Part shown: positions 6,949 to 64,000 of the stretch, one piece after another | Layout: each line of letters starts with the position of its first letter | Position numbering within the stretch: position 1 is the first letter of the stretch | Source of the DNA: Penicillus capitatus | Taxonomy: Eukaryota > Plantae > Chlorophyta | Reading direction: 5' to 3' | Length of the DNA: 64,000 bases | Assembly (NCBI GenBank): GCA_965649825.1 | Contig: OZ287709.1 | Span: 310,001 to 374,000, forward strand | Translations under genes and position numbers: made by a program | The notes under the pieces: generated by a model | The model's database searches: none | Seen by the model: only the letters and a program-made list of their open reading frames with translations | What the model was told of the DNA's origin: nothing

Positions 6949-6972
6949 GGAAGGAGAGAGACAAACGTCACA

Positions 6973-8752
6973 TCATGCGGCAGGCGACGACCGAGCCTTC
7001 TCGAATCCCCTCTTGGCCAACAGAGCCGCGCCGTACGAAGCCTCTCCTGCACCAGGGGGAACAAGACTCGAGTGCGTGGACACGGACCGAGAGACAGACC
7101 GAAGGGAGCGGCTTCGACAGGCACGCCCAGAGATCGCCTGCGCATCTCCGTCCACTTCAGATTCGCCGCTCCGCCTCCGGCCGTCCACACCCGTCTGACC
7201 GCCCCTGCCCCGAGCGTCTGCAGCCGACGATAGCACTCAGCTTCGATGGACGCCATTCCTTCCAGCATGCCTGCACCGATGTCGATCAGCGCAGCACCCA
7301 CTCGATGGCCTGCCTGCCTTGGAGAAAGAGACCGTCGTCTGCCGGGCGTGGTTCCAGACGCGGTTGGTACAGCGGATCGTTGAACGGGAATCTCTCTCCC
7401 GGCGACGCGAGCGGATAGTAGTTCAACTGCGACGGCGCTTCGTGCTGCATCCTGTCGGTGAGTGTCCGGATCTCCTCGTCCGTAAAGTACTGCCTCAGCA
7501 CAGCCCCTCCCGTGTTCGACGCTCCGCCCACCAGCCACATGTCGCCCAGTCGATGCGAGTAGACGCCGTGCTCGACGGCATCAACGCGTTTGCTGCTCAG
7601 CATCTTGATGGCGAGCGTCGATCCCAGGCTGGTGACAGCCTCTCCCTCTTCCTGCGCGCCGGATGCCAGAAATGCGGCGATGCTGTCCGTGGTCCCGGCG
7701 CAGACGACACAGTCGGTGTGCAGACAGTACTTCTGCCGAACCGCGTCTCGAACGCGGCCCGCGACCGTACCCGGTGGCACGATCGCCGAAGGCAGAAGCG
7801 GAAAGAACTCCTAGCTCCGCAGGAGAATGCGTCAGAAGGCGAAGTCGTTGCAAAACGGTGTGCGACCTGAGACTGAAGCCAGGACGGGTATGCCGCTGTC
7901 TCTGGATCGTATCCCAGTTTCAACGCGTTGGTGTCGTCCGACTGGCGGCAGTTTCCTGCTCGGAACCCATCGTCGAAACCGGCAAGGCGCGCAGAGGGAG
8001 AGAGACACCGTGCATGAGATAGGACAGCCAGTCTGCTTGATGCATCACTCTGGGACGCCTTCCCCGTTCTTGATGCCGCTGCCAGGTGTTGTCCAGGTGC
8101 CACTGGAGCACCTTGCACAGCGTCGAGGTGGAGGCCCTTCCCGGATGGCGCTCTGGTGCAATGGCCTGTCTCGAATGCGGGACCAGTTCAAGTCAGCACG
8201 CGTCGACTTGTCCGGTACTCTGGCGCGGTGGACCGCCGCTGAGCTCTGTGATGCGTTGTACCATTGAGGCGGCTCCAGAGACTCTGCTGTCCCCTCGTCG
8301 ACAAGCATGGTGGTAGAGGATGTCCCGTCAAAGGCCAACGACACAATCCGCGTCGTCAGCTCTTCCGGTATGCGTCCGAACAGCTCATCCAATGCCCTGC
8401 AGTGAATGTCGCGCAATTGACAGATACTATCCTGGTCGCGGAATCCTGCATACCGCTGCCATGCAACATCCCACTCTTCCTCCGGTCGACGGTCGTACGG
8501 CACTCTCCCTTCGTGCAAGGCAGACGAACTCCCTGAGTTGCAGGCTCTTCACATCAACAGGCCGTCGACGATCGGACGGGTTCTTGCCGTCGATCACCTC
8601 GCCCTCGCTCCGGACGTGCCGAAATCGATTCCCAGGTAGACCGGTCCTTCGACGTACGCCGCCATCGCGTCTCCCCTCCGCGGGACGCGTGCAGGGCCTC
8701 TCCTCCTCGTCGAACTCTGAGGAAAGGCACGCGGCTGCAGGAGGATCGCCAT
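6973..8752 (-). CDS. XK1: Plastid D-ribulose kinase / xylulose kinase 1 (FGGY family), multi-exon, with a 1-nt deletion at ~8598
   Basis: YLGIDFGTSG, FDGTSST, HQADWL, NALKLGYDP, GTTDSIAAFLA, TSLGSTLAIK, GGASNTGG, WTAGGGAAN and EASYGAALLA match plant XK-1. Transit-peptide-like N terminus. Confidence 0.92.
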
Positions 8753-8815
8753 TCGCCAGATGAGCAGAACAATAATCGCCTCATTCCCGTCGAGATTTCC
8801 CTGCGGCACTTTTCC

Positions 8816-10576
8816 ATGCGCACACGCAGCGGACATCGCGAATCCTGGTCCAAAAGGGGCGTCGGCGTCGCCATCTGTTCGTTCGTCACGCTCTCCTTCT
8901 TTCTATCGTGGTGGGAGCTCTCCTACCGCGATACCGTTTCCCGCGAAAGCCGTTGGCGTCCAAATATCCAAATCAATGTCGTCGATAAGGACGGTGTCGC
9001 CCTGCGCGGCGGCGCGGGATTTCAGGGCGCCTCGCGGAACGGCAATCTTGCCGGACGGAGCCCGAGGAGAGGCGTCGTGGACGAGGAAGACGTGCCGGTG
9101 TTGGACGGGGGGACCCGGGACGCGCCTCCCGATGCGCCCTATCGTTTGATCCAGCTGCCGAAGGCAGTCAATGCAGCCGCCGCTGCGTGCGAAGAGCAGC
9201 CAGCGGATTGCCGACGGTTCAACGACTTCGTCCAGAGCATGATTCAGGGAGCCACATCGGAAGACCGAGCCCGCCTGTACATCGTTCCGGTCGATCCTCT
9301 GGCCATGATCCGCGAGGTGAATCCCAATCTCTACGCGAAACTCCTGCGGACGCTCATCGACGAGCTCAACTCCTCGAGGCCGTACATCCGATTCAAAGGA
9401 TCCGACCACGTCTTCGTGTGCCTGGCGGCGGCTTGCCAATCGTTTGGGGAGGAACTTGCCGAGAAGCTGGCAGACGATCGCGGAACGAGGGCAATCTTCG
9501 CGGGCGTCGATCTCGACGTCGAGCGTCTGACGTGGCCGTGTCCGCTCAGAACGCTGAACATCGATCGGCAAGCGGTCCGGGATCTCGGTTCCCTGCCCGG
9601 AAAGATCACGAGAGAGGCTGCTTTCATGATCGACCGCCACAACCGCTGGGTGTGCGCGGACGAGTTCCACGCCGCCAACCACTTCGGCAGCTACGAGTCC
9701 TCGATGGACGTCGGCGGCATCTACATGGACGAGTGAGTGGGACGTCCGCAGAGTGGGAGGACGGAGCGAGCAGAGTGCGTGCGGATGCTGTTTAGGTACC
9801 AGTTCACGATGTGCCTCAATCCCAAGAGCGGCAGCACGATGATGATGTTTCTGCTCAGAAGAATGAAGCACAGGAAGGACTGGAGGTCGAGAAAGAACGG
9901 CCTTCCCCACAATCCCGAGCTTTCCGGACTGGACTACGTGTCGAGCATCAAGAGGAAGGACCCCAATGTCGTCAAGGCAGTGCTCTCTGAACCGGACGGC
10001 GTCGCGTCTGAGACGACTGTTGTCTAGGCGATCTACGACAGTCCCTTCATTCTGAAGGCCGTTCTGGTGCGTCACCCGATCCCGCGTCTGCTCTCGGCCT
10101 ACCTCGACAAGATCGAGGTGCTGAAGGAGTACAACAGAGTGGAGGGCTTGGAAGCATACGTGAAGGCGCGCGGAGTGCCGTCCTTCGCGGAGTTCGTCGA
10201 GTACCTCATCGCCACCTTTCCCGATCCAGACGTTCTGGAGGAGCACTTCCAGATCCAGTCCGCCAGGTGCGGAGCACGCTACCACAGGTTCGACTTCGTG
10301 GGACATCTCAGCGATGTCGGCACAGAGTTCAAGGAGTTCGCACAGTCCTTGAAGTTCTACGACGAGTACGTTGCGACCGGATGGGGAGAGGACGAGAAAC
10401 AGCAGTTCGGTGTGCGCTCCTACCAAGTGGACCAGCGCTACGCAGGAATGCAGATCTGGAAGTACTACACGGACGAGCTGATGACAAAGGTCTACCGGTA
10501 CTACAAAGAGGATTTCGATCGATTCGGATTCACCATGGACGAGATTCTGGTTACGAAACCATTGACACGTCATTGA
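8816..10576 (+). CDS. Type II membrane protein: exostosin (GT47)-like N-terminal segment fused to a Sulfotransfer_2 carbohydrate sulfotransferase
   Basis: N-terminal TM helix, then LYIVP and RPYIRFKGSDHVFV. An intron (GTGAGT...TTTAG) joins it in frame to PKSGST (5'-PSB), RHPIPRLLSAYLDK (3'-PB), HFQIQSARC, FDFVG and YKEDFDRFGF. Confidence 0.8.
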
Positions 10577-20398: not shown

Positions 20399-20517
20399 CG
20401 AATTGGAAAAGAAAAGTGAATTCGTGGTACAGTGTCGTGCGCGAATAGTGGATCAGAAAGAATATGCTCTGTCTATCGTGTCCGCATCTGCGCGCTTCGA
20501 TCTTCAACAACCGTGAC

Positions 20518-21171
20518 ATGACGTTGAAGGGAGTGCCTCTTGCCGGTGGCGTCTCTGATTCCATCGGCGATGCGGCTTCATTTGGAGTCGTGACTGTCAG
20601 TGACCGTGCCCACGATGGCGTCTACGAAGACGCCAGTGGCCCCGCTATCGTGCACTTCTTTCAGGAAGCAATCGAATCACCCTGGACGGTGCATTACCGC
20701 CTGGTACCCGATATTCAGCCGGAAATCGAGTCCGCCCTGAAATCCCTGGTCGTTATTGTGTCTTACACCAAAAGTGATGTGACGTGAGATGTCTAGGTTG
20801 ACGAGATTGGATGTTGTTTTGTGGTCACGACGGGTGGGACGGGTCCTGCTCCGAGAGATGTCACTCCTGAAGCGACGGTTGCCGTGTGTGACCGTCTGAT
20901 TCCGGGATTCGGTGAACAGATGCGTGCGATCAGTCTTCGGTACGTCCCAACGGCCATTCTCTCACGCCAGACGGCAGGGAGTCGCGCTCAATCCCTCATT
21001 CTCAATCTCCCTGGACGTCCCCGTTCCATTCGAGAAACGCTCGACGAGATTTTCAAAGCAGTGCCTTACTGTATCGATCTCTTAGGCGGTCCTTATATCC
21101 AAACCATCTCTGCTGTCCTGGACGCTTACCGTCCACCAAACGCACGACGATCTTCTTCTGTCCAACCGTAA
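20518..21171 (+). CDS. CNX1G: Molybdopterin adenylyltransferase, stand-alone MogA-like G domain (1 intron)
   Basis: VTVSDRA...YEDASGP, TTGGTGPAPRDVTPEAT, GFGEQMR, LSRQTAG and ILNLPG. Confidence 0.92.
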
Positions 21172-21885: not shown

Positions 21886-22445
21886 ATGCCGATTGGCGGT
21901 AAACTCACGCTGAAGGGCACGTCTCGAACGCCATCGCATAGAACCCTCCATTCTCACACGTGTGACAACAGGTGGCGCTTCGTTGAAAGGAGTGACGAAG
22001 CGCAAGAAGAAAAAGAAGAAATCGAAGGACAGCGAAAACACAGATACCATTGAGAAAACAACAGGTGAAGGATAGATGCCAGGTAGAAATGTGTGATAAG
22101 TGTGAGATTCTTAGTAAAGGGGATCAATCCCACGTCCGTTTCAGTCCAGAGCGGCAAGACATACGAAGAGGAATTCGACATCGAGACTCGACGCGCTCAG
22201 GTTATCATGGATCACACTTGTCACTCAATGGCGTCATGTGATGATGGTGTAGATAGGCAAAGGGAGAAGCACACCATGGGGGACGTCCTTCACCAAGCCG
22301 CCCAAGATTCTACACGGTCTGGCCGTCACATCATTTCCTTGAGTCCACGTTCGCTACAGGGTACGATCGAGAGATCGAAGGCGATACGGCCGAGAAGCGA
22401 TTGGACATCCGCTGTGCACAGCGAACCGATAAGTTCTGTAAATAA
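21886..22445 (+). CDS. Small basic, probably nuclear, protein (4 exons; first intron GC-AG)
   Basis: Spliced product MPIGGKLTLKGGASLKGVTKRKKKKKK...GKTYEEEF...STPWG...ILHGYDREIEGDTAEKRLDIRCAQRTDKFCK. Phases are consistent across three introns. Confidence 0.75.
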
Positions 22446-22638: not shown

Positions 22639-25013
22639 ATGGTGACGGAACCGAAAGATGTGCTGACGCAACTTGCGTCGAGTGACGCCGAAGTGCAGTG
22701 CCACGCCGTGCGTTGCTTAAAGAACGAAATCATTGGCAATCTCAGCCGAAAGCAGTGTTTTATTGGATTGGGGGCTGTCCCGCGAATTGTCCGTATTCTT
22801 GCGTACCCTCAGGAGCAACGCCTCGCTGTTCAAGCAGCGGCGGCTTTAGGAAGCTTTGCTTATCAGAACGAAGAGGGTGTGGTTGCCATCGTCGAAAGGT
22901 ACGACCGGGTTTGCAGTCGATGACGCATCAAATACAGCGGTGTCTGCTTCTAGTGGCGGCGTGGCGCATTTACTGAAAGCACTGGCCAGTTCAGACAAAA
23001 AACTCGTGGAAGCAAGTGTGCGGTCACTCAAAATGATCTTCCAGGTATGGAGCATGCATGACATCACTCATCTTGCGTGCATGCATTCTATCCATGTGCG
23101 TGTTTGTATGTCCAGTCATCTATTTCGCCAAGGGATGTGATCTTCGTCCATCCGGCCTTTGATCGATTGGTAGAGTTTTTGGATATCAACGAAAAATCCT
23201 TTGCAGAAGATACGCTCATAATTTTTGCCAAATGCTGCCAGACCAAACAACACGTACGTCCATCGATCCGTCGCTGTTCCCACGGTCCTGACGAAGGGCC
23301 ATCCCTTGTGAACAGCAAGAGCTTCTGCTGAAATCGGGCGCTCTGCCAAAAATGATCAAACTTCTCTTTTCACCTGTCACGAGTATTCATGTAAGAAATC
23401 CATGCAGTATTAGATACGGCGAGATCTGAATGTGGGATGGCGATGGCAGTTAGCAGCCATGGAAGCATTGGACAAGTTTACGGCCCATCATATCGAAGTA
23501 TGCCAGAGTTTAGTGAAGCGAGATGACGTTGTGAAGACTCTGATGCGATTTCTCCGCGGCAGAAATATCCGTGTGCAGTACGCTGCCTGTTGTCTGCTGA
23601 GCAATCTCAGCGTCTCCGTCGATACGGGAGTACGTCGATCTCTTCTCTGCCTCCATCTTCAATAGCTGATGTGACAGTGTTGGTTCTCGAGTGAAGTGAC
23701 AGATGTGCTGGTGCGACTGTTGGAAGAGCCATCGCTGGTCTCGCGTGTTCCGGCAACACTTGCCAGTATTACCTGCCATCGATTGGAGCTCCAGGAGCTT
23801 GTCCACAAAGCAAACGGTTTCCGAAAACTCTGGACCTTTCTCACAATGGATGACGCTGAGAAAGACACGACTCTGTTGACCGGTATCGTCCAGGCGGTCG
23901 GGACCATGTGCCAATACCTGAAAGTCTGTCGTCGCGAGGTTTGTGCGTGCAGCTGCATCATAGATGTGTGAGAAATGACTGAGAGATGCTGTAGTTTGTG
24001 ACATCGCGTACCATCTGGCGGGTGTTATCGTTCATGGAATCGGAATCGCTCGAGCTACGACTGGCAACATCGCTGTGCTTCGAGACCATCGTGATGGAAA
24101 CGAACGAGGGCGCACGTTCCGTTCCTGTCACCCATTACTCGCAGGATCCCTCCATACGCCTAAAGGAATACGCATCCGTTGCCCTGACGATTCTTGTTTC
24201 CGAGCAAGAAGATCCGGAAGCTTATCTCCAAGAAACCTTGCAATTTCTCGTTCCCTATGCGCTGAGTCCGGAACCCAGTATCCGTTACAAGGCGATCTGG
24301 GGATTAGGTGATGTCATTCGGATGTGCTCCAATGAAAAGTGCAATCGATGGCTGCCCATTCTCAACGAACTCTTATGGAACTTCGTCCGCGAAATGGTGC
24401 AAGATGCATCGACCGAAGTTCAGGAAGAGGGATTGAGATTCCTCGAAGCGATGGTGCGTTGCAACATCGGCATCCAGGCAGCGATCGATTGGAGCAACGG
24501 AGAACTGCTCCCCCTCATCGCACAGAAAATCGACACGCCAAAGTCACATCACCGCCGCCGCCATCATCCACACTCCATCAAGCGTTGTGTGACGCAGGCC
24601 CAATCTCATGACGGTGACAACACTGGCTTTGAACATCGCCTCTTCTGTGGCGCATTCCGAAGTAGAGCATCAGACAGCAGTGATGGGATCGGGTGTGCCG
24701 CCCCGTCTGCTGGCATGTTTGGAGGAGCACTGTCCGGAGGCTGTCAAGAAAGCGGCCATCCACTGCGTTATTAACCTCACTTACAGAGACGTTCTCCCCT
24801 GGGGAGACGAAGACTACAGATCTGCGGATTGCAGAGCCAAGGTCTGTATGGCATGGCTCCTTAGCCTCCCTCTCCATTCCTCTCTCCTGTTCCCAGGCTC
24901 TCCTCGAATTGGGCATCGAAGAATCTTTGATGAAGTTAGAGAAAATAGGTGGATCGGAGTCACTGATGAAGCTCGTGAAAGATGCCAATGGCTTTCTTGG
25001 TCAGTTAGAGTAA
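22639..25013 (+). CDS. ARMC8: Armadillo-repeat protein ARMC8/GID5-like, copy 1
   Basis: LKNEIIGNLSRKQCFIGLGAVPRIVRIL, AAAALGSFAY, ARM repeats, and AAIHCVINL. The reconstructed exons stay in frame. Confidence 0.8.
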
Positions 25014-25471: not shown

Positions 25472-27787
25472 ATGGCTCCCCAAAGTCGAGACCTTATTCG
25501 GCAGCTCAGCGCATCGGCGACGAACGACGCTGATTCGAAACTCCGTGCCGTTCGCAATTTGAAAAACGAGATTATCGGCAGTCAGAACAAGAAACAATGT
25601 TATTTGGAACTCGGCGCCGTGCCGAAGATCGTTCAGTTACTCGCGTCACAACAGGAAAAGAAATTGACGGTTCAAGCGGCGGCGACACTCGGAAGCTTTG
25701 CATACGGAAACGACGCTGGTGTGACGGCGGTCGTCGAGAGGTCGATTACTTCATCGAATCTTCACACTCCCTATAACATTTCTCACTCTCTAGCGGCGGT
25801 ATCGCCCATTTACTGAAAACGTTATCCAACGATGACGAAAAAGTGGTGGAAGCGGGTGTCCGGTCACTGAAGATGATTTTTCAGGTTGTTGTTCCGGAGG
25901 CTATCAAAACGTGTGAGATATGTGTGACCTGTAGTCCGCATTGTCGCCGCGAGACGTGATTTTTGTCCATCCTGCATTTGATCGTCTCGTCGCATTGCTC
26001 TTCAATCCAAAGAAGTCCTTTGCCGAAGACGCAGCAATGATTTTTGCAAAGTGCTGTCGAACAAAACAGCATGTAAGCAAACAGCATCTCACTCTTTCTC
26101 ACTCTCAGCTGCTGTGCTAGCAAGAGAAATTGATGATCTCAGGAGCACTAACCGGAATGGCTCGCCTCCTTGTCGCGCAATCACCCAATCGCCAAGCAAG
26201 ACATCACACTCTCACACTTTTTTGAGCGCCATCTCATTGGAGTGTTGTAGGCAGCAGCCTTGGAGGCCCTTGTGTCAATGTCACATCAAAATGCTGATGT
26301 GTGTGGAGCCCTTTTGAACATAGCAGGCGTTAAGAATGCACTCCTGAGCTTTACCAGAGATCCCAATTCGCGATTGCGTCTCATGGCCTGTTCCGTCCTG
26401 ACCAACATCAACAGGATGCTCTCGACCGACACGGACTGTCTCCTGACCTTCCGAGAACAGAAGCAGATACTGCAAGTTCTCGTCAAGCTTCTGCATGACT
26501 CAATCATCCAAGAAGGCGTGCCAGATATCCTGGCAACACTGACAGAAGACAGGTATTCATGACAACGCTCCAAAACGTGGGCGATATGTCGCACTGCTTT
26601 TCTGCAGAAAAGATCTCCAACAGGCAGCTTTTGAAGTGGATGCTGCTAAAAAGCTCTGTGGATTTTTGACCGATACAACGAAAGAGACCTCCGGGACGTT
26701 CAAAGTCGGCGTCTTGAGAGCACTGGCTACTATTTCGCGGCATCTCCCTGACTGTCGGCAACAGGTCAGCCATACACACCATCTCAAAGAGCACATACTC
26801 ACGTCTCGCATAGATTGTCAACTGTCAAGCCGTCCATGCCATCATCTCCTGTTTGAATGCCCCTCTGAGCGATGTTCGTGCCGCAGCTGCCTTCTGCATT
26901 CAGAAGATGACTGCCACGGTCCAAGACCTGCAGTATGATTGGGTTGTCGCATCCATCCACCCTCTCATCACACTCTTGGAGGACGATATGGTCGCTGTCA
27001 AGGTTGGCCCTTCCTTTTGCGTACTTCCTAAAACGGCCAGCTGTTGTGCCGTGCTTAGACCGAAGCGTGTGCCGCTCTCTGCAATCTTTTGTTCGAAATC
27101 AACCAGGCCAAGATGGCATGCGTTGAAAATTGCTTGCACTTGTTCGTGGATTTCACTCAAAGCGAGGAGCCACAGTTGGTCTCCCATGCCGCCTGGGCAT
27201 TCAAGAATCTCACACACGATCTTCCGGGAGATCACCGTTGTCGAGTTCTCAAAGAATTTCATTGGTCGATCGTCAAGAATCTTATGTATCATGACGATGC
27301 AGCCGTACAGACATCCGTTCTCTGCTTTATCCAAAACGTCTGCTCCTCCGATCCCGAAAGCATTCAGAGTGTCTTCGATTGGAGTCAAAAAGAATTGCTC
27401 CCTGTCGTCTCATCCAAGCTCGCCCAGAGTGAGACCACTCCAGCCGAAATCGTCACAGCTGCTCTGAGAGTGGTCAGCAATGTCGCGACCGGATCCCAGG
27501 AGCATCAGACGGCAGTGATGGATTCCGATATTCCTAGACTGTTGTTGACATGTCTGAGAGATCAGAGATCGGAGAGTATACGTGGCTTTGCTGCATGGTG
27601 TGTGATCAATTTGATCTGGCGTGATGAATTGCCATGCGCGAACAATGGAGGAGGAGAGGGGGCACGTCAGCGCGCGGCAGCGCTGAGGGAGATTGGTATC
27701 GAGGCACAAATGCGTCAGATGCAGGGCGATGCTTCATTAGATGTTCGCGAACGTGTGCAAACCGCAATTGGGTTCTTTTCCGTTTAA
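25472..27787 (+). CDS. ARMC8: Armadillo-repeat protein ARMC8/GID5-like, copy 2
   Basis: LKNEIIGSQNKKQCYLELGAVPKIVQLL, AAATLGSFAYG, AWAFKNL, AWCVINLIW and DASLDVRERVQTA. Confidence 0.88.
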
Positions 27788-27819: not shown

Positions 27820-28392
27820 ATGATGACGCGTCGTGCATTGACGCTGCTATGGACGCAGCGGCGCTTAAGTTCAGTGGAAACGTCGTCTATCGTGGGTGCG
27901 TTCGTTCGCAACTTCGCGGCGGCTGCCACGTCGAAAGGATCTGTTAAGAAAGAAACGAAAAAGGCGAAGAAGGCGGAGAATACAAGCGAGAAAAAGCCTC
28001 GCCGACTGTCGTCGTACGCTCTTTTTTTGAAAGAATTCCACACGAAGCAACGCAACATGGGCATCCCGTTACCAGAGCTTTCACGACAGGCATCGAAACA
28101 ATGGACCGAGATGTCGAAGGATCGCCAACAGAAGTATGTTGACGAAGCGAATCGATTGAATGTGATCGTGGACGTTGAGAAACCGAAAGTGAAGGATGCG
28201 GCAACGAAACGCTCGGCGAATCCATACATAGTGTTCTTCAAATCCGTCTGGCCGACCGTCACTCGACAGCATCCTGAAAAGACAGCTGCCGAGCGCGTTC
28301 GGATTGTGGCTGAAATGTGGAGAAATCTGTCTCCGGAGGAGAAGGCACGTCGCAAAGAGGCCTGCCTTGCTGTTAATGCTGCTGCTACGTGA
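27820..28392 (+). CDS. Twin HMG-box protein with a predicted mitochondrial presequence (TFAM/Abf2-like), intronless
   Basis: Arg/Ser-rich N terminus without acidic residues ending RNFAAAA. Two HMG boxes: KPRRLSSYALFLKE...WTEMS and KRSANPYIVFFK...WRNLSPEEK. Confidence 0.85.
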   Translation: MMTRRALTLLWTQRRLSSVETSSIVGAFVRNFAAAATSKGSVKKETKKAKKAENTSEKKPRRLSSYALFLKEFHTKQRNMGIPLPELSRQASKQWTEMSKDRQQKYVDEANRLNVIVDVEKPKVKDAATKRSANPYIVFFKSVWPTVTRQHPEKTAAERVRIVAEMWRNLSPEEKARRKEACLAVNAAAT

Positions 28393-28689
28393 TGTGACGT
28401 TTGTGTGAGATGATGTGACTGTCGGCTGGCTGGTCGGTTATGTACTGCCGGATAGGATTCCCTGTAAAAATGCGGACGGACGTTCGAGACACGCACGACG
28501 TTCGCACGATCTATTCACTATGGAGTGGATACGCTCACAGAATTAAAACTTTTCACGATCCTAGGATTCCCTTCATGACTTCGGTCTTCTCTGCCTTCCC
28601 GCAGAAGGTTGTACGGATGGTTACTCTTTTTTTCTTTTTTCTTGTTCTTTCTTCTTATCGAAGATGATAAACACCAAGATCATCAACGG

Positions 28690-29499: not shown

Positions 29500-32400
29500 T
29501 CGAAAGGGAGCTAAGACGCATGAATGGTCTGACTACCATCATGGTTACTGCGTCCACTACCGCCACTCTCCAGTGTCACGGAGTTCATAAAGCTCACGAG
29601 TTTACGGACCAGTTGTGTCTCCCCTACTCTTTGCAGCGCTGTGATGATCGTGTTATAAGATACCATGTCTGGTTGGACGGCATTACTCGAGACCATATGC
29701 TGGAAGACGTCCCAAGCAGATTGAGCAATGGTTGGCTTTGATACCACGTCTGCATTGAGAGCGCCTTCACTCAGAGCCGCCAGAACTTGATTGAATGTTG
29801 CCAGAGTTGGTTGAACATTCGAGTCATTTGTAATGAGGTGTTTCAGAACGTCCAGGGCCTTCTGCCAGTCACCCATTTGGCCATAGGCACAAATCAAAGT
29901 ATTGTACGTCACGATCGATGGTTCCACACCGGCTGCAAACATATCCTCAAACACATAGACGACCTAAACAGCAGCATCTCACACAAGTGTCACATCATCA
30001 AAGTGTGAGATACCTTGTCAGGTTGGGAACGTTTTTGATAGCTGGACATGATGATGTTAAAGGTCACGGCGTTGGGTTTCACTCTGGAATTCGACGAGAG
30101 AAGTGAATTGAAGAACTGCAAGGCATCGTTCCATCTACCCTCTTTCTCAAGGGCGGACAAGAATGCATTGGCACATGTTATATTTAACTCCATTCCCGAC
30201 TGCTGAAGCCATTCCCATACTTCAATCACTTTGTCATACCTCTGGGCATCACTGGCGACAGTAATCAGGGTTCCAAAGGTTGCAATGGAGGGCTCCAATC
30301 CACGCATACGCATGTTATGGTACACCTGGATATCACACATATTAACGATGTTGTCAGGGATGGAAATGTGTGAGATGACTTTGAATGCCATGTCCAATTG
30401 CTGTCCATTTCCACAGGCCTTCATCACCGTGTTGTACGAGACGATATCAGGACAGACTTCGCCGCCGCATTCCCACATCAGCTCAATGAGTTTCAATGCC
30501 TTTAACCACTGAGGCGGGTGCGCGCGGGCGTACGCCGCAAGCAGTGCATTGCAGCACACACGGTTGGGTGCCGTCTTTCTGTTGCTGATGCTCCTCGTAC
30601 GGAACATGACAGTGGCGGATGGAGCCGGGGCAGAACTTGCACGCGTCATGGGACATGTATTGTACAGAAAAGGACCTCCTCGTTGATGGGTGGGCGCACC
30701 GTATTGACCAGAAGACTCTTGTCCTGGTAACGACAAGCCATCTGCATTGACAGACAAGGTGCGCACGGGATCCACCTGCAGACAGACACCCATAGCGATC
30801 GAAAAATCGACGAAGGAGGGGGAGGAGGACATACCTGTTGTGGAACGAACGTGGATTCAGGAATCTCCGTCAAAGCTCTTTGCATGGAAAAGGATCCTGC
30901 ACGTGTGGTGGGTGTTCCGAAAAGATGGTCATTGGATGCCATGGCCGAAAAGGGTGTTGCCAGATGATTCAAGCTGCTTGTCGCATTGCTCTGGCGACCT
31001 GGGCTCAGAGGAGGAGGATGTGAACCTAATGCCGCGAAGGGAGTCGGTCCAGCAGATGCCGGTAAATTCATTGGGGTTGCTGGTGATGACGTCGGGGGTT
31101 GAGAGCGTTGCTGTTGGTGCTGTGTATCGACGGCGCTCTGCTCTGCCGATCGGTCACCTGCTACTGGCGTCGGTGGCGAATCTGCACGTGGCGGCGCCGC
31201 CTTGTGTGACGTCGTTGTCCGTGTTGGTGTCGTTGCTGTCATCAATGATGTACTGTTCTTTTCGGTCTCTGCCTGTTTTTCCGCTTCGGCAATGGTATCA
31301 TCAATGGAGAGTGCAGCCAGGACATCTGCAACTTCCTTCTCCGCAGTTGGCTGCGGTTTATCCGTATTGGCAAACAATGCGCGACTCTCTTCGGTAGCCA
31401 CATGATCAATCTGTGCTTGAATGGCGCCACTCGATTGCATGCTGACAGCGCGGCGTTCCATGAAGGGCATCGGAGGACTTCTACTCCAAGATCTCGGAGG
31501 AGGCGTCATCGGTTGACTGCTCTGAGGACTACTAACATTCCTGACAGAACTTGCACGGCCAAAACCTGGTGGACCAGAACGATGGGACCCACTAAACACA
31601 GGCATGCTATGCATACGACTCATATCCAAACCACCGCGCCTAGAATGCCATTCCTTAACACCTATCCCTCCATCCTCAGCAAAAGGCAGCGATGACTCAC
31701 GGTGTGGCGCTCTGCTGAGCTAAGACCATCTTCTCTCTCGTCTGGGGATCCAATGCATCGTCCATGCTCATCAACAGAACTTGAAACTGAGGATGCTCGG
31801 CATACATCGAGATAAACACCTGCTCCGCAATCTGCCACATGCCACCTATACATAAACATTTCTCACACTTTCTCACTCTTCCCCCACTGAATAGACCTTT
31901 GTCCAATGCGGATATCAGACTGCAGCAGGTAACGGCATCCGGATGGACATTGGCATTCATCATGTGATTGAACACATCGATTGCCAAACTGCATTGTCTT
32001 CCCTTAGAGAGGGCACTGATGACGGAAGAGTAAGTAATGGTGTCTCGGCAGAGTCCATGATTATCCATGTTGTAGAAAATCTGTAGCGCCTTTTCCCACT
32101 GGCCTCCGCGATCACAGGCAGAAATGGCGGCGTTTGTGATCGTGGTATCCGGTGTCAGGCCCATTTCTGGCAGCGATTCAAAAACCTCCAAGCCCTTCTG
32201 CCAATGTCCTTCGCGACTCAATCGGCTCACCAGTTTGGTTAATCCTACAGATACCGCAGATGCATGCACAAACATACATCGACGATTCGGGGTACCTGGC
32301 AACCGGGGACGAAACTGCGATGACGTCAAGATGCGCCGGATTTCGCCACAACCTGGACGCGCGGCATTCAGCGCCGCCGTTAAACTAAAACGAACAAACA

Positions 32401-40040: not shown

Positions 40041-40373
40041 ATTTTCGACCGATGCAGAGGATGTGACTGTTGCCTCGAGACCGTGCTGCGCTACGGCGTT
40101 AGACATGGCGAGCAGAAGCTGCGCCACCGAGATCAGTCACATCACGAAATGTCTTCGTTGACTTGACCGTTTCTGGAGAGAATATTTCGGAACAATGGAC
40201 ATGGCGGACGAAAGTCGTCACCGATGACCATCCTTACATACCGTTGCATCATGCCGGTATCCCATGATGTGACTTGACTTGGCTGACGCATCCTCTGGTG
40301 GCGCTGATGTGACTGCTCGTCGCTTATCATCGTTGTTCAGGCAGCAGTCACATCCTCGACACCGCTCAAGAAT
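40041..40373. repeat. Imperfect 35-bp inverted repeat (28/35; core 18/19) enclosing a cluster of the TGATGTGAC motif
   Basis: Left arm 40041-40075 versus the reverse complement of 40339-40373. Core is gaggatgtgactg(t/c)tgcct. Confidence 0.75.
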
Positions 40374-40818
40374 CAACGCTGTCCGGACAGAATTCCTGAA
40401 AAGCGACTCTGCACTGCACAGACGCTTCATCTTAGATACAGGTTCTGACGGCCGTCACCACACGTCCTGTTTTCGAAATAAAACAGTTCAGCCTGACATG
40501 TGTCCCGAAGAGGACTGCCAAAAACGTTTTGAGTAAGCACGATAGGAATCTGAACCTCAATTACAAATAAATGTCGCGTTTACGATCCGTCTGTTGATTC
40601 CATCAGACGTACCCACATCTGTCCCATCCCCATGCCTGATCAAAACGGAATACTCTTCTGGCGAACTCCAAAGCGAGAAAAACAACATTGCCAGTAGACA
40701 ACACTTCAGCTGCGGCAGAAATACGTTCGAACAGATATCGACAAGCGTTCTTCTCCTGTTCTCTGCGAGACCAACAGGTCATCGAGTACCTATCTCATCC
40801 TTCTCTTCTCACACTTTT

Positions 40819-43688: not shown

Positions 43689-44885
43689 ATGCGCTGGGCG
43701 AGATGGCCACGAGACGGGATGACGCTCAGATGGCCCGTCGATCTTGCAACGATTTGCCAACGACGGATAATCAAAACGGTCGGAGACAAACCGAGATGCA
43801 TTTGCCAAGATGCGATTCCAATCATGACGCGGATCACGTTGTCGACGATACCTTCGCCACAAATCCCCGCCGCGACACGCCATCGATCGGAGAAAGGAGC
43901 CGTTCAGGGGAGAAAGGAGACGTCGTGTTCTGCACCCGCTACCGAGAACACCCAAGTGCGACGAAGGGATCTGTTGGCAACGGCGGCGCGTGCTTTGCTC
44001 GTCGTGCCTTTTTTGGAGACGCGTTTTTCGGCAGCCTGGGCTGGTCTTCCTGAACAAGTCGGTGATTACCTACCGGCTGCCTCACTTCCGGAGTTCTCTC
44101 TCTTTATCCCCGACGCCAGAAAAACACCAGTACCTATTCTGCGTGGATGCTTTGCCGTCTGCATGTCATCTAGGCACTTCGTGCAGGGACAGTAGATCCG
44201 CAACAGCCCTATCGTTTTGAGCTGCCCGTTACTTTCCGAGAAAGCAAGGTCGCGAATATTCTCAGCGGAAATTACTGCCAGGTTCCGCCCTCCAATGCAC
44301 CTGTGTCTTTCTGTATCCTATCGTTTTTCTAGCCCAGATGTGATGAGCCATGGACAGAAGTGATATTCGAGGATCCAGATTTGGGTCGTATCGCTTTGCT
44401 GGCGTCTCCCTTGAAGAAACTGACAAGCAAAGCGAATGCGAGGATTGAAGACATCGGTCCGCCAGAAGGCATCATTGAATCCATCGGATCCTACGTCACC
44501 GGTCGGCACCTGTCATTCAGTATGTCTGCTATCTCACAAACGGTTTATCTCAGGGACGTTTCTGGATGAAGAGAGTGTGCTGTCCATGGAACAGCGTCAA
44601 CAAGACGACGGCCGTTCGGTCCTGTCACATCATTTTGATCCACAGCCGTCATGCCTTGTGTTTTAGTATTACTACTATGAAGTGGATTCGCCTTATGGAC
44701 TACAGGGGCGGCACTCCTTTACAGCATGCACCACCAAAGTGCCGATCACTAATTATTAAGTGAAACACATGTGTGTGCGGTTTTAGGGTGAAGTTGCTCT
44801 GTTACTGGTGGCGAGTGCCAATGAGAAGCAATGGAGTCGATCGAAAGAGCGACTGAAGCATGTCATGGAATCTTTCAGAGCGTAA
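43689..44885 (+). CDS. PPD4: Thylakoid-lumen PsbP-domain protein, PPD4-like
   Basis: Twin-arginine RRDLL signal. KTPALRAG, KVANILSGNYCQPRCDEPWTEV, IGSYVTG and VASANEKQW. Confidence 0.85.
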
Positions 44886-52776: not shown

Positions 52777-54183
52777 TCATTTTTCTTGCTTGTGCTGCAG
52801 TCCTTCTGTAAGAATGTTGCGAACCCGGATGACCAGTTCGGAGGTCAGTGGCCGCGTTTGGGGGTTGGTATCCAGACACGACACCACAAGAGCATGAATT
52901 TCGGCAGGGTAATGTCGAATGGGTGGCTTTGGCCACTGAATGCGTCCATTGGCAACGGCTAATGCCAAACTGCCACCGCTTTCGGACATCACTCTCTCAA
53001 AAGGCGAAACGCCATACATCAAGAAATACCTGTCACATCACACGCGGATTAACGTCTGTGCCACAACAGAAGCGGCACCATACAAGGTACATCCCAGTGA
53101 CCAGGTATCGATCTTTTCATCGATGACTGTTGGGGAAGGGACGTCATAGAGTTCGGGGGCACGGTAAGGCATAGAGGAAAGGACTTCGATCTCTTCCTGC
53201 AGCTGCAAACTCTGTTGTCTGTTTTCGATGATGATCTGCGACGGCCCCACGCTTCCGAAATCGGACAGGACCGCATTGTATGACGCATCCTCCACCTAAG
53301 GACCCAGCCAATCGCTCGGTACGTGACAGACAGGCGGTGTCTTAGGCGCCTACCCATTCAACAGAGTCCATGTCTTCGTCACTGACTTCGGGAATACAGG
53401 AGAGCATGAGTCCTTGGGGGTCATCTGGATCCTGATCACAGCCGTTACGGTTACGATGCTCGATGAGGATGTTATGTGGCTTGATATCCCGATGACAGTA
53501 ACCAGCAGCATGGAGGAATTGCACTGCCTCGCAGATCTGCCGGAAGATATCGAGCACTGAGAAAGGCGACAATCGACAGCCTGATTCGTACAGACGTCCC
53601 ACCAGCTCCGCAGCCGAGCCTTCCTGCATTCCATCCTCCAATGACGCTGAAGACGTGTGATGCAAAGAGTGTGTGCGTGTGACCTGGTAGTATGAAAAGA
53701 GCATGAATCCACGATAGGCACCATCAGCAGGTGTGTTCTGCACGACGGCGCTGGAGTGGAGACGGACGATGTGTGGATGACGCAGTTCATTGAGAATCTC
53801 AATCTCTGCCTCTGCCAATCGAATCTGCTCCTCCGATCCCAAATTCATCTGCAATGCTGCATGGGCAGAGGTGTGGGAAGAAGGTGTGATAGGGGGACCA
53901 TCTTAATGGCGTAGCATCGCTCTGCTACAAAAGGGTGCTCCGTTGTGGCGAGTTCCTTCACCAAGTAGATGAAGCTATAGCCACCCTCTCCCAACTGCAC
54001 GAACAAACAGGGCGCTGTGTCTCACGACGCTGTGCTTACGAGTTTCAGGATTTTGAAGCGTCTGTTGTGAAAGTAGATCTCTGGCGATGGAAAACAGGCA
54101 CTCGGGAGCAGATACAGTGTCGTCCAGCACGAGGCCAGGTATTCGAGGACGCTATCGACCATCCGCATTGCTTTGTCCGTCAT
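52777..54183 (-). CDS. STK16: Ser/Thr kinase, STK16/NAK family (multi-exon)
   Basis: RRFKILKL|LGEGGYSFIYLV, AIK, HRDIKPHNIL, SDFGS, YRAPEL, DTWSLGCTLY and SPFE. Confidence 0.9.
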
Positions 54184-59148: not shown

Positions 59149-60468
59149 TTATGAGCAGAGTTGCTGGTTATAGAGTTTTGCCACGTCTTCGTACTCGTAC
59201 CATTCTTTATGACCCTTCTCTGAACCGTTCAGCAGTCTCACTTCGACGCTAAATCTCTCAATGTCTATGCCAGTGAGCTCTGCAATGCAATCTTCATTGG
59301 GACCCTTCAAAATAAGAAGCTTTCCGCCAACGGCCGGGAGAACCGTTTCCAATTCTGCCTGATCCACACGGACGATGTCTCCTGAGCCGATCATTTCAAT
59401 CTCTGCAATGTATGCATCGATTAATTTCTTGATGACACCTTTCTGCTTGTAATATCCATGGATTCGCAATCCGGGTGACATGACTTTGACGACAATTCCT
59501 GGCTTGATCCATCCATCCAAAGTCAGTTTCTTATGCTTCTCCCTGATCCCAGCGTGAATCTTCTCCAAATGTGTCAATCCTTTGCTGCGACGTTCTGGGA
59601 CCTGCGGATAGCCTAAACGCATCAGACCCCTGGATAGTCCATCGGACTCCATGCGATAAATCACTTTGTGATGTGACGGGAGGATCTTCTGCGAAAACTT
59701 CCAGCTTCTGTTTCTTACTAGCCTCCTTTTCATCGCACTCTTTCTGAACGGAGAAAGAGATGGGGCCATCTGTTTCTGTTCTGTTCAATTCTGTTATCGT
59801 TGTTGCCGGTTCATCGGTCGCTGTCGTTGATATCTCTGTTTCATCGATCTGCCTCGCTGCTGCTTTTTCGATCTGCCTTTGTATCTCCTTCATCTGTCGC
59901 ACATCATCTTGTTTCTCTGCCACGTCCCGTTCCTTCCTCTTGCTACGTCGCACATCCGCCTCATTCTCTTTAGGGACCAACTGCAAGACCACAGCAACGA
60001 ACACACACTTCAATATATGACACTGTCTGAGGGGTGGGTGCATTTCACTTGAATAAACCATCCCTTGGGCGTTTGCTCAATCTTGCAAAGTCCTTTCTTT
60101 CCTAAGTACTGTACGAATCCCGAAAGGGAGAGCCATCGGGTTGAGTTCATGTGGATGTGGTCCTTGTCTTTAATGAATTCGTTGTAGACACGGTTGGCCG
60201 AGACACGTGAATTGGGATGGCAGACACGCATATGTGCCATGAAATCGGATTCGAACTGATGTGAATACTGTGACACGACTTGACCGGGATTCTGCCCGAA
60301 GAGTTCCATCTGACGACGATGACTGGCACTTGTCTGATGACACTTGAATCCGTTCTCATCGCGACACTGCTTCTGACAGAGCTGACAATACCATCGCAGT
60401 TTCTGCAGACCGCGAGCTTTGATGCGATTCGATATCGCTTTTGGCGTCAAGAAATCATGCTTCGGCAT
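59149..60468 (-). CDS. KIN17: DNA/RNA-binding protein KIN17
   Basis: TPKAISNRIKARGLQKLRWYCQLCQKQCRDENGFKCH zinc finger, HIHMNSTRW winged helix, and C-terminal KOW/SH3 domains with LETVLP. Confidence 0.96.
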
Positions 60469-60590
60469 TCTGTGCGTCCAGGAAGAAGGTGTGATACGAC
60501 ACCGACGGTGTTGCCCTCGAGTTCGGTCGGATCCGGTGAAGGTCGGATGATGTGACGTGAGATGAGGACCGGCCGACAGGCATTGAACGA

Positions 60591-61823
60591 AATGGACGAC
60601 GCATCGAAAGCGCGACTCCGTTGGGAGTTGGAGAACAGTATCCCGTCATCGGAAGACAGCGACGCCCTCTTTCGTTACGATGCGGCGGAGGAACAGACCA
60701 TCCGCCGCCAACGTCCCTGGAGCAACGACCCGCATTACTTTAAACAGTACCCCTTCTCCGAATCGACATCGCCCCCCTCACTCTCTTGTCGTGTGATAGT
60801 GTGAAGATTTCTGCTCTGGCGTTACTGAAGATGGCAATGCATGCCAAATCTGGTGGTACCCTTGAGGTGAGGCACGACGAAACGGCTTGAGATCGTGAGT
60901 ACATAAGGGCATGGAGATTTGAAGGTGATGGGACTGATGCAAGGGAAGATCCAGCACCACACGTTCGTCGTTCTGGACAGCTTTGCCCTTCCCGTCGAAG
61001 GAACGGAGACGCGAGTCAATGCCATGGACTCGGCCAATGTCTTTATGTGCGAATACATCAGCCTCTATGGAGTGCGCACCATTCTTCCACCTGTCACATC
61101 GTTCGTTGATGTCGGGTGTTGGTGGTTCAGGAGTTGGGTCACGGGGAAAATGTCATTGGCTGGTATCACAGTCATCCAGGCTATGGATGTTGGCTGTCAG
61201 GAATCGACGTGTCCACGCAGATGACCAATCAACAGGGACAGGATCCTTTTCTCGCCGTCGTCATCGACCCTGTCCGCACCATGTCTTCAGGAAAAGTCGA
61301 GATCGGCGCCTTCCGTACCTTTCCCGAAGGATTCAAGCCAGAAGATGAAGGGCCGTCTGAATACCAGACGATTCCCCTCGACAAGATCGAAGACTTTGGT
61401 GTCCATGCCAAGCAGTACTACGCACTGGACATTGCCTTTTTCAAATCTGCCCTCAATGCACGTCTGTTGGATCTGCTGTGGAAGGACTATTGGGTGAAGA
61501 CACTGTCTGCCTCACCGTTGCTCTTGAATCGTGGATTTGTCCGTCGTCAGTTGTCAGATATCGGTGAGAAGATGCAGGCGGCGGAATGTCAGTTGAGCCA
61601 TCGCATCAATCGGTATGCAGTTTCGTCAGATGAACGAAAAAAGGAAGAGGGCGTCTTGGTTAAATTGCACAGAGATACGTGCAAGATGGCATTGGAACAA
61701 GTCAAGGGTCTATCCAGTCAGATCATTAAATGCATGTTGTTTCATCAGCACAGTAATGACATGGCGGCGGCTTTCGATAGTCAGATGGATGCTGAAGATG
61801 TCGTTGTTTCGGAAGAACACTAG
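60591..61823 (+). CDS. CSN5: COP9 signalosome subunit 5 (JAMM protease)
   Basis: [39 protein letters not shown] and [10 protein letters not shown]. Confidence 0.97.
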
Positions 61824-62438
61824 GATTTAAATGAGGTTCGCAATCGATGAGCAACGCAACTCCCATATCCATTTGGATTTTTCTCTTTCGTCATTCTGCT
61901 TCCGATTTTAGAGAATTGAGCAGAACGGCTGGTGGTCACATCAAACAATGTCAAACATGCATGCATACATTCATGGAAAACAAAACCGCATTAGATGTAC
62001 GTTTGTAGGAAGAACAGAATTATTGCGAGCTTCATGATTCACAGACTATATTCATCATACCATGTTTTCCGTCGGCAATGTCCTCGCGAGACGTCGGTCT
62101 GCTAGAGAATTGTCTTATTTCACATCAGCTGCTTTCAAACCAATCGTATAAAAAACTGTGACTCAAGTGGACAGACCACAAGCTTCATGTAGACAAAAAC
62201 ATCAGATGAAGTTGAAATATCGCCACGAGAAAGAAGAAAGTTAACCCCATCAAAGAGTACCTTATCCCTGACTTTAACCAGCTTGCTTTCCACTTTGACA
62301 GAAATGCTTTACGGCAAAAACCTACGATGTCAAAGAAGGAGAAGAAAGCTCAAGAAATCCCACATATGATGGTAAAATAAAAACGGATCGTGCAGTTGTT
62401 GATGTTGTGGTGAAAGAATATGGAAATCGGAAGAGCCA

Positions 62439-63668
62439 CTATTTCTGCTCTGTCTTTTTGTTGCCGCTGCCAATTTGTTTCTTCAACAATGCATCCACTT
62501 CTTCCTGCTTGGCAAAGCGGCCTTTGATGCGTGGACGATTCTCGGCATAGGCTTTACGCGATGCGTAACGGATCCTGTGTCCCCACGTCCGTCTCTTACG
62601 TTTTTCTAGATATCTATCACACAAAGAGGCAGCTTCGCATCAGCTCCCTTTCAGACATCGGATGCAGATCAGACCTTGCTACTTTTGCCTTTCGAATGAG
62701 GTTCTGTTCAGCAGTGAGCTTTCGAGGAGGGATTGGAACAGTGTTGCTGGGTTGTGCCACTTCGACGGCGGGAGTCATGTCGGGGTGCACATTCACTCGA
62801 TAATGTTGCACAGCTGTCGCAGGAGCAAACGTGCCCGATGGACAACATGACGAGGCGGCAAACACACAGCAACCATTCATCCAAGGCCTTTCTATCCCTA
62901 AACCATACATACTCCATCACTTACAGGTATTATGCAAAAACGAACAAACATTACCTGCATAGTGGCTTGTTATTGTCGGGCACATTGGATGCTCCTCTTT
63001 GACATATCTCACTTCCTCTCTCTCCTGTTCCTCTTCTTTCATCCAGCCAACATTCGATTTTGCATCCTGCAACGGGAAAACGATCTTTGTGATGTGACCG
63101 ACGGTATGAGGGCGCACATGGAGTGAGCAAACAAGAGTATCATCGTAGTTGGTCGGGTCATCCAAGCAACCCAATACATTATCAGAAAAAAGACAAACAT
63201 CCGGCAGTGTCGTGCAGATGTCATGGTTCGTATGCAAACTACGCCGCGGAAAGAGCGCAGATGAAGGCATTGCTGCCTCGTTCTCCCCCATCTCGGAGCA
63301 TCTCTCAGACGTATTGTCCAGAGGACTCACGCTACTGTCGGTACCGCTTGAATCCTGCGCGACATGTCTGCCTTTTTCAATCATCCGGTGCTTCGTTCTA
63401 CCTGACGGCAATACGTTGCACTGCTGTTTGTCTTGGACAGACAGGCGCCACGCGCATAGAACTCGTTTTCCGTTGCAGGCGCTACTGAAACGATGTCACC
63501 ATTATCGTAGCTTCCGTTCTGAAGCGACGCATGAAACTCATCAGGCGGCCACTTCAGGCGCTGCTGCATGAACGTCGGTTGAAACGCAGAAGCGCTATCT
63601 TCGAGTCCCACACACTCATACGACGAAAGCAGACCGTATCCAGTGTCTAATTCAGTATTTAGCCACAT
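62439..63668 (-). CDS. CCT-domain protein (CONSTANS-like C terminus, no B-box seen)
   Basis: RKAKVAR|[35 protein letters not shown]. The start at 63668 is inferred. Confidence 0.85.
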
Positions 63669-64000
63669 CGATGCCGTCTGTAGGTCAAACAGGAGATCCC
63701 ACGATCCAGAGCGACAGACGCAAAAGATGGAATGCGCAGGAGTTCTCTTTCGATGTTTTGATGTGACAGTTCCAACCTTCGACGGATTCTTTCGATGGCG
63801 TCGGTTGCGCGCGCGTCTCGAGCAAGATGTCCTGACAGCCACAGTCACGCGGCCTCGCGTCTTGTGCCCGCGGCGTTGTTTCCAGTACATGTCTCTCCGC
63901 CGCATCGGAAACGACCAATCGCGTTGCGCTATGGCATTGACCGTTACGATGCAAGCGATTCGAGACACCTATCGCCTCGGGGTCGCGAGGTCGTGATCTC

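Follow-up and report, generated by a model that had tools for sequence, protein, structure and literature searches.

Cis-acting words in non-coding DNA are known as such, and several described systems come close to the one treated here, the 9-mer TGATGTGAC (reverse complement GTCACATCA), which recurs in a 64-kb stretch of the green alga Penicillus capitatus (GenBank assembly GCA_965649825.1, contig OZ287709.1, positions 310,001 to 374,000; hereafter the window, whose own numbering is used below). TALE-homeodomain proteins bind composite sites: TGATTGACAG for PBX-MEIS in animals and, in plants, TGACAG(G/C)T for KNOX, known inside introns as well, and the tandem TGAC-N-TGAC for BEL-KNOX. The introns of Trichomonas and Giardia carry a fused branch-point/acceptor motif, ACTAACACACAG. 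Introners, found in Micromonas, Aureococcus and dinoflagellates, are similar over the whole intron, usually longer, and are recent, lineage-specific gains. Bacterial DNA uptake sequences and uptake signal sequences (DUS/USS) and Chi-type words belong to prokaryotic mechanisms, competence and RecBCD. In Arabidopsis, the intron-mediated enhancement (IME) motif TTNGATYTG probably acts through DNA, responds to small sequence changes and is active outside introns too (bioRxiv 10.1101/269852).

Our word resembles TALE sites in its two head-to-tail TGAY half-sites, and six window copies continue as TGACAG, three as TGACAGGT. However, the half-sites lie 5 bp apart here and 4 bp apart in PBX-MEIS sites, every position including the spacer is invariant here, and the density of about one copy per 3 kb is far above that of sites for developmental regulators. 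TTNGATYTG, likewise a short word over-represented in green-lineage introns within transcription units, may be regarded as the closest functional analogue in that lineage. It is degenerate, though, and reads GATYTG where we find GATGTG, with G in the place where the plant motif needs Y; it is also limited to ~1 kb downstream of the transcription start, whereas our copies occur before ATGs and at 3' ends as well, and 1.5-4 kb inside a long ARM/HEAT gene. The Trichomonas/Giardia motif is likewise extended and sharp, with a branch A running into the AG, and TGATGTGACAG directly before the exon at 23667 and 53032 has a similar layout, with a branch-like A 8 nt from the 3' end. Yet that motif occurs in nearly every intron, at a fixed distance and always in the sense orientation, whereas ours occurs in about 15% of introns, at variable distances, half of the time antisense, and outside introns too. 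With introners the word has in common an aquatic algal host, inverted-repeat symmetry at intron edges and GT/AG inside the terminal word, but only 9-18 nt are shared here, the 64 kb contain no family, and the single datable intron predates the word. Like DUS/USS and Chi, which are lineage-specific exact 9-12-mers at about one per 1-3 kb, it occurs on both strands, is mostly non-coding and sometimes forms inverted pairs. Literature searches for the word and its core returned primers and unrelated matches only, and no description of the word was found. What is new here is a sharp cis-acting non-coding word with intron-edge polarity, which we tentatively read as the site of a predicted DNA-binding factor.

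Enrichment, sharpness and conservation

The window holds 22 exact copies of TGATGTGAC or GTCACATCA (Table 1), one at every position given in an earlier note that had been made from the sequence by eye. Dinucleotide shuffles of the window gave a chance expectation of 1.1 copies (sd 1.15, maximum 5), and whole-window Markov models gave 0.99 at order 3 and 3.06 at order 5. The strong excess claimed in the earlier note therefore stands, although its expectation of about 0.5 becomes about 1 by the shuffles and the order-3 model. TGATGTGAC ranks first for enrichment among all window 9-mers, as does its core GATGTGAC among 8-mers (33 copies, 4.3 expected). Most copies were said to be non-coding, and 17 of the 22 indeed lie within the 26.7 kb called non-coding, where Markov models of order 1 to 5 trained on the same DNA expected 0.5-2.4; when the copies were masked before training, 0.4 were expected (P<=1e-9). 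An excess over a high-order Markov model of non-coding DNA, on which the earlier note had staked its claim, is thus present. It amounts to about 20-fold overall and 7-40-fold inside non-coding DNA. The enrichment is confirmed, and the word is a real signal.

The word is sharply bounded. Positions 2-9 are invariant, with their one-mismatch variants staying at background (15 in all, where about 18 are expected), and position 1 alone tolerates C (T in 22 copies, C in 7). Several of the seven copies of the C-variant, CGATGTGAC, lie in coding DNA as xxC GAT GTG ACx, encoding Asp-Val-Thr. G precedes ATGTGAC in 33 of 34 occurrences. Outside the full core, GTGAC, GTGACAG and TGATGTG were not enriched in the window, which speaks against a general 'GTSAC at intron ends' signal. 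On its sense strand the word contains two TGA stops, in two frames. Longer identities do link some loci, as had been noticed earlier: TGATGTGACGTGAGATG is common to sites 20775 and 60548, and the extended form TGATGTGACGTTTGT occurs at 6967 and 28390 and is nearly matched at 43373 and 29989, a sub-family described as non-intronic. Nevertheless, comparison of the 30-nt flanks of the 22 copies revealed no relatedness, and in a whole-window repeat search no family carried the word, similarity between copies extending over at most 18-26 nt. These results suggest that the word is short and is not a dispersed repeat. Its copies are very unevenly spaced, with none in 7-20.7 kb and one in 44.6-59.7 kb.

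A PPR protein of the window is identical on a metagenome contig in ENA (ERZ25074695, ctg340026), and the DNA of this contig is 99.6% identical to that of the window (93 differences in 22.4 kb). Because of this identity, and because the window starts ~11.5 kb before the contig's first base, the contig appears to be another assembly, strain or haplotype of the same species. No single-nucleotide difference between the two falls inside the word, against about 0.3 expected, which is too few to inform.

A sister species (ENA ERZ26696514) is syntenic with window 30.5-52.9 kb, with 85% identity in coding and 69% in non-coding DNA; comparative support thus covers these 22 kb and none of window 1-30 kb. 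The sister species carries 8 copies in 22.4 kb, where 0.33 are expected; the word is again the top 9-mer, and its density is as in the window. Non-coding DNA makes up only 31% of the aligned region, yet it holds all seven window copies found there. Five of them are identical in the sister species, a sixth differs at one position and the seventh falls in an indel, and such perfect conservation at 5 of 7 sites compares with 10.9% of non-coding 9-mers (binomial P=2.7e-4). Each of the two species also has private copies, indicating that sites turn over.

The best match among catalogued proteomes was Caulerpa lentillifera (CSN5 71%, purple acid phosphatase 57%), followed by Bryopsis, which places the source among the ulvophytes, probably in or near the Bryopsidales. 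In 20.6 kb of a more distant relative (L003; CSN5 77% identical, GC 45.5%) we found no copy, not even of the 7-mer core, where about 7 would be expected, and no private word of comparable strength was found in the same 20.6 kb. A scan of JGI metagenomes with the spliced prenyltransferase returned only contigs of 41-45% identity, all of them motif-free, and a homolog search with the purple acid phosphatase did not return the orthologue of the sister species. Judged from these sequence comparisons, the word is specific to a narrow clade and under constraint within it.

Where the copies lie

Exon maps were drawn from the synonymous/non-synonymous pattern in the window-sister alignment, Pfam domains and protein homology. 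The coding model was a 3-periodic Markov model trained on the alignment-derived exons, and about half of the intron models come from coding statistics only. A codon-usage map from six open reading frames (ORFs) discriminated too weakly, and at 51% GC intron calling from open frames only let too much through. A motif-blind automatic predictor put false introns into the single-exon PPR gene and was excluded from the statistics.

The introns of the window are short and GT-AG, typically 44-61 nt, with very variable donors, and about 15% of them carry the word. The motif-bearing introns are ~48-59 nt long and hold about half of the sites. Across its intron the MoCF product reads ALKSL/VDEIGCCFVVTTGGTGPAPRDVTPEAT (in a longer account ALKSL/VDEIGCCFVVTTGGTG; the slash marks the splice junction), and the kinase product across 53030-53083 reads DTWSLGCTLY/FLMYGVSPFE. 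The modelled intron at 24543 ends in ...TTGTGTGACGCAG and is flanked by open frames of 182 and 163 codons (score 13.2). No frame-consistent intron model was found for 44624. Loci 34326 and 53032 share 18 bp, used in opposite orientation. GTGAGAT looks like a common donor sequence. In the motif-free relative L003, CSN5 intron 2 (~9743-9784) is apparently a GC-AG intron (GCAAGC...TTTTCAG) where the window has GT-AG.

Read on the strand of the host gene, sense copies lie at relative intron positions 0.41-0.88 and antisense copies at 0.08-0.49 (one-sided Mann-Whitney P=0.032 for 5 vs 4 copies, and 0.009 for 5 vs 6 with two weaker introns added; the test is post hoc, n is small, and several of the intron models come from coding statistics). 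The polarity that the earlier note had described is thus right on the host strand, which is the minus strand for 34326 and 53032. Relative to transcription, about 10 copies are sense and 7 antisense.

Of 25 supported introns, 14 have a TGAT in their last 38 nt, against about 11% by chance. Among them are motif-free introns and 4 of 5 introns of two relatives, L003 and L009; the A of TGAT usually lies 18-23 nt from the 3' end. These counts suggest that TGAT is very probably the branch-point core in this group. The word's own TGAT stands at the canonical distance in the prenyltransferase (20 nt) and MoCF (19 nt) introns; in the kinase and 23667 introns it is off this distance, and a better-placed TTAAT or TCAAT lies upstream. 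From the end of the word to the acceptor the gap is 2-25 nt. The word does not behave as a branch-point or fused 3' splice-site motif, being present in ~15% of introns, at variable distance and about half antisense, nor as a pair of U12-type signals, for each intron has one word and the two forms are reverse complements of each other rather than distinct signals. The earlier argument that occurrence in both orientations speaks against a branch point was half right, since the sense strand starts with the local branch-point core. This overlap probably shapes where copies can sit. Two unrelated introns of L009 (22-62 and 205-247) and window 26280-26308 end in a near-identical 12-14 nt, TGATGTGTGTGG(T)AG, and an extended branch-to-acceptor consensus, TGATGTG, is suggested for part of the clade.

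The copy at 29989 sits in the loop of a hairpin with the stem ATCTCACAC/GTGTGAGAT, but local hairpins are not a general property of the copies. A second over-represented family, (A)AAGTGTGAGAT, occurs at 28405, 29976(-), 30005, 38703, 31855(-), 22102, 25913, 30370 and other positions, and its inverted copies at 29976/30005 form a hairpin stem (z -3.1) in the PPR intron, with the main word in the loop. GTGTGAGAT has 8 copies (0.7 expected) and AAGTGTGAGA has 6 (0.16 expected), often adjoining the main word.

Five cores lie within 300 bp in the palindrome at 40.0-40.4 kb: three belong to full copies, 40136(-), 40265(+) and 40305(+), and two are 8-mers, 40060(+) and 40347(-). The segment forms a single long hairpin, with z of -5.6 for the plus and -4.9 for the minus strand. 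Copies are paired across the arms (40060 with 40347, 40136 with 40265), and both paired copies are intact despite 30% divergence of the arms. Because 40136 and 40265 lie on paralogous arms, the count of independent copies is one lower. The left arm lies inside a 293-nt indel (~39906-40198); the sister species lacks this stretch, and copies do not mark its ends. The copy at 40265 continues as TGATG-TGACT-TGAC, and its orthologue in the sister species as TGATG-TGACG-TGACT-TGACA, four TGAY units in a 5-nt register. No second copy of the palindrome, such as a dispersed repeat or a miniature inverted-repeat transposable element (MITE) would have, was found in the window or in the relatives' loci. 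Its origin may lie in an inverted duplication or in a MITE that has decayed, or it may be a hairpin-RNA locus.

Copies had also been placed at stop codons. This holds for 28390, where no continuation of the HMG box is visible 3' of the copy, so that the stop stands, but the apparent stop at 29989 is intronic, between PPR exons. Pfam gave no domains for ORFs around 62-64 kb, and no Rfam families or tRNAs were found in the window or the relatives' loci.

Table 1. Copies of the word and associated features in the window. Strand + means that TGATGTGAC stands on the plus strand and - that GTCACATCA does; sense and antisense refer to the host gene; a slash marks a splice junction; UTR, untranslated region; 9/9 in sister, all nine positions identical in the sister species.
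Position	Strand	Context
6967..6975	-	End of minus-strand ORF (no Pfam match), convergent intergenic gap; extended form TGATGTGACGTTTGT
20775..20783	+	Sense; MoCF-biosynthesis gene, 48-nt intron 20749-20796; 13 nt before acceptor TCTAG/G; Pfam domain split
22325..22333	-	Probably antisense, 5' part of long plus-strand ARM/HEAT gene; no good intron model; unclassified
23667..23675	+	Sense; 3' end of modelled 48-nt intron 23630-23677 (...TGATGTGACAG/), ARM/HEAT gene; coding statistics only
24543..24551	-	Antisense; forms donor (/GTCACATCA) of modelled 55-nt intron 24543-24597
26280..26288	-	Antisense; 5' end of short modelled intron (GTCACATCAAAATGCTGATGTGTGTGGAG/); HEAT exon follows; weaker support
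28390..28398	+	TGA is stop of HMG-box ORF 27805-28389; extended form TGATGTGACGTTTGT
28411..28419	+	Second copy, 21 nt downstream of 28390; 3' flank of HMG gene
29989..29997	-	Sense; middle of 50-nt intron 29964-30013 between two PPR exons; downstream exon PPR E=2e-20
34326..34334	+	Antisense, at +6 of 52-nt intron 34289-34340 of minus-strand gene (/GTACCTGTCACATCA); 9/9 in sister
35675..35683	+	Sense; first intron of prenyltransferase-beta gene, 35647-35697, 51 nt; 14 nt before acceptor; 9/9 in sister
40030..40384	.	355-nt gene-free palindrome; arms 40030-40144 and 40265-40384, 70% inverted identity
43373..43381	+	Divergent promoter/5'UTR between 794-aa PPR gene (-) and plus-strand gene from ~43536; 9/9 in sister
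44624..44632	-	Antisense, plus-strand gene; probably intronic (GTCCTGTCACATCA...), weak model; kept with its 3' flank in sister
53032..53040	-	Sense; abuts acceptor (TGATGTGACAG/) of 54-nt intron 53030-53083, minus-strand protein kinase gene
59669..59677	+	Antisense; KIN17 gene (-), middle of modelled 52-nt intron 59647-59698; coding statistics only
60548..60556	+	45 nt upstream of CSN5 ATG (60593); ~130-bp divergent promoter/5'UTR common with KIN17
61093..61100	-	8-mer form CGATGTGAC; antisense, CSN5 intron 3 (~61072-61130); homology-supported
61935..61943	-	112 nt downstream of CSN5 stop; antisense to CSN5
63090..63098	+	Unclassified; no domain evidence in local ORFs
63759..63767	+	Unclassified; no domain evidence in local ORFs

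What may read the word

None of the readings accounts for every observation. We tentatively place first the reading that the word is the recognition site of a predicted sequence-specific double-stranded DNA (dsDNA)-binding factor, because of the near-balanced orientation, the promoter and gene-free copies, the conservation, the clade specificity and the clustering. We infer the reader to be a DNA-binding protein, and likewise infer the family of the factor and the packing explanation of the polarity given below. The candidate factor would read the word in and around transcription units, namely in introns, 5' and 3' UTRs, divergent promoters and the palindromic cluster. What is generic to sites of transcription factors and architectural proteins was found here: orientation-independent occurrence in non-coding DNA, a homotypic cluster and above-neutral conservation. 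The architecture TGAT-G-TGAC may be seen as two TGAY half-sites, head to tail and 5 bp apart, reminiscent of a TALE-homeodomain heterodimer site, and by inspection a TGAC core does adjoin a head-to-tail TGAT/TGAC half-site, as in TALE sites. For a sharp 9-bp word, a zinc-finger protein with three fingers would be just as good a fit. No TALE factor gene lies within the window. In Caulerpa, lineage-specific KNOX/BEL duplications, altered DNA-recognition residues in BEL and an expanded TALE family have been reported (PMC6476727), in a genome paper that makes no mention of such a motif. Lineage specificity between close relatives would fit a fast-evolving pair of factor and site.

Compaction would then account for the intron bias, and packing into tiny introns for the polarity. 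In our proposal, given a compact genome and TGA stops in two frames of the sense strand, copies persist almost exclusively in non-coding DNA, which inside genes means introns of ~50 nt. As the sense strand mimics a branch point (TGAT), sense copies would be tolerated only between the branch point and the acceptor, and antisense copies would take the only other free stretch, just after the donor.

Several observations weigh against a dsDNA-binding factor. The copies hug the intron edges, and in 10 of 11 intronic copies the GAC end points toward the nearer exon. By rough estimates, introns hold ~11 copies in ~3.6 kb and other non-coding DNA ~11 in ~20 kb, a several-fold difference in density. 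Of the roughly five divergent promoters in the window, only two have the word. Tandem TGAY and TGAY-N-TGAY variants other than the exact word are not enriched. The invariance of positions 2-9, spacer G included, is sharper than in most transcription factor sites and resembles base pairing. Finally, the packing argument accounts for the sense positions better than for the antisense ones. The protein-binding or chromatin element that the earlier note suggested would nonetheless fit most tests (orientation, promoters, palindrome, sharpness, conservation and homotypic cluster).

An element acting in splicing at the RNA level is a serious, though less likely, rival. Sense UGAUGUGAC would be an extended branch/3' splice signal, with UGAUGUGACAG at the exon boundary as its fused branch-acceptor form, and antisense GUCACAUCA near the donor would pair with the UGAUGU branch region of the intron, joining the intron ends or regulating retention; copies outside known introns would sit in unannotated UTR introns. 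The concentration in introns, the edge-hugging and the sense 3'/antisense 5' polarity are what such an element should show, but ~85% of introns do without the word and its distance from the acceptor varies from 2 to 25 nt. In many introns TGAT lies ~19-21 nt before the acceptor, and in those of prenyltransferase and MoCF it overlaps the word. Two introns, supported by homology or by a model, end in TGATGTGACAG, yet both have a better branch point (TTAAT or TCAAT) upstream. In three or four introns (26280, 59669, 61093, 24543) the antisense word is complementary to a downstream TGATGT, GTGAT or TGTGAC, at 26280 to the TGATGTG branch region of its own intron; however, there is one form per intron, the pairing with the branch region is just 5-7 bp, and antisense copies are kept as exact 9-mers though only part of the word could pair. 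The all-or-none behaviour of an 8-9-nt word resembles base pairing, and around 60548 a 5'UTR intron of 38 nt would be plausible. Against this, the copies in promoters, at the HMG stop and its 3' flank and in the palindrome have no demonstrable intron, and orientation is unbiased overall.

More doubtful is an auxiliary intron-edge signal, in which the GAC end would face the exon at both splice sites and which would work through lineage-specific RNA branch/anti-branch pairing, helping to define or control introns of ~50 nt whose donors are very weak, or through a domesticated transposase-like protein marking the DNA of introns.

The earlier note had also suggested introner-like terminal-repeat relics, and these are now disfavoured; we consider it improbable that the copies are terminal inverted repeats of an intron-generating transposon. 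Such an element would read 5'-(CT)GTCACATCA ... TGATGTGAC(AG)-3', its internal GT and AG serving as splice sites. The orientation of the GAC ends toward the nearer exon gives a geometry of this kind, GTCACATCA is the donor at 24543 and 26280, and TGATGTGACAG is the acceptor at 23667 and 53032. There are weak second arms at 26280, at 24543 and in prenyltransferase intron 2 (GTGTGTCACG...CGTGACAG), the 18 bp common to 34326 and 53032 are in opposite use, and the 355-nt palindrome holds five copies. However, there is no dispersed family, similarity stopping at 9-18 nt; the flanks are unrelated, and decayed copies are missing, with one-mismatch variants at background. Exact orthologous copies persist over ~31% non-coding divergence, unlike neutral relics. 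The 293-nt cluster indel is not bounded by copies, GTGAC/GTCAC alone is not enriched, and copies also lie in promoters and 3' flanks. Among the motif introns of the window there is no length-wise similarity such as an introner family would have, and instead of inverted repeats at both termini with a target-site duplication we saw one arm per intron and no duplication. A literature search for introners in ulvophytes found nothing. As to intron presence or absence in relatives, which the earlier note had proposed as a check, all three CSN5 introns stand at identical positions in the motif-free L003, and introns 2 and 3 also in L009. CSN5 intron 3, which carries the 8-mer form and is the sole datable intron, is thus common to motif-free relatives, suggesting that the intron is older than the word.

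Equally improbable is a chromosome-level signature word that has nothing to do with gene expression and is maintained by selection or a drive, serving for example as a recombination/repair or replication site, or as a small-RNA seed target of the hairpin at 40.0-40.4 kb. The word is lineage-specific, sharp, dense, non-coding and on both strands, like bacterial uptake and Chi-type words, and the long hairpin locus has it on both arms. We know of no eukaryotic precedent for a word of this kind, though; the spacing is very uneven, the left arm of the hairpin is absent in the sister species, which still keeps the word, and the hairpin has no extended complementarity to other sites. An artefact of composition or chance, arising from codon usage, simple repeats or errors of assembly, deserves practically no credence, since, although the C-variant CGATGTGAC is partly coding, the excess holds over every background, the copies are non-coding, and both a second species and a separate, independent assembly of the first show it again.

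Neighbouring features and implications

The start codons of the purple acid phosphatase (-) and MoCF (+) genes are ~66 bp apart (20398-20464), leaving a very short divergent promoter without the word; the first copy is in MoCF intron 1. GTTCGTTCG/CGAACGAAC has 9 copies where 1 is expected (10688-10712, 58615-58639 and the 99.6%-identical ENA contig), and GTTTGTTTG runs recur in intergenic DNA. Both may be words of 3' ends or terminator regions. Two pairs of direct repeats have 74% identity, one of a 98-nt unit in the long ARM/HEAT gene (22949-23046/25789-25886) that starts at an acceptor-like TCTAG, the other of a 262-nt unit within the single-exon PPR gene (41303-41564/42224-42485), suggesting duplication of repeat units inside genes. 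At 47078-48574 (-), an ORF of 498 aa combines Chlamydia polymorphic-membrane-protein repeats with a right-handed beta-helix and is conserved in the sister species; this domain is unusual for a green alga and may have been acquired horizontally. At least three PPR-repeat genes lie in the 64 kb (29559-32410, 40822-43302), which suggests a PPR-rich genome.

If the word is a protein site, it would be a near-binary cis-code that marks a large share of genes in this siphonous-alga lineage and gives a handle on its factor, and it would provide a case of a factor-site pair that arose and swept a genome between close relatives. If it is read as RNA, lineage-specific information would help to define ~50-nt introns with very variable donors, and as an intron-edge signal it would add to intron definition a layer that is peculiar to the clade and has not been described in green algae. 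With either the protein or the RNA reading, the word would offer a clean test between DNA- and RNA-level action of intron-borne motifs, a question still open for plant IME.

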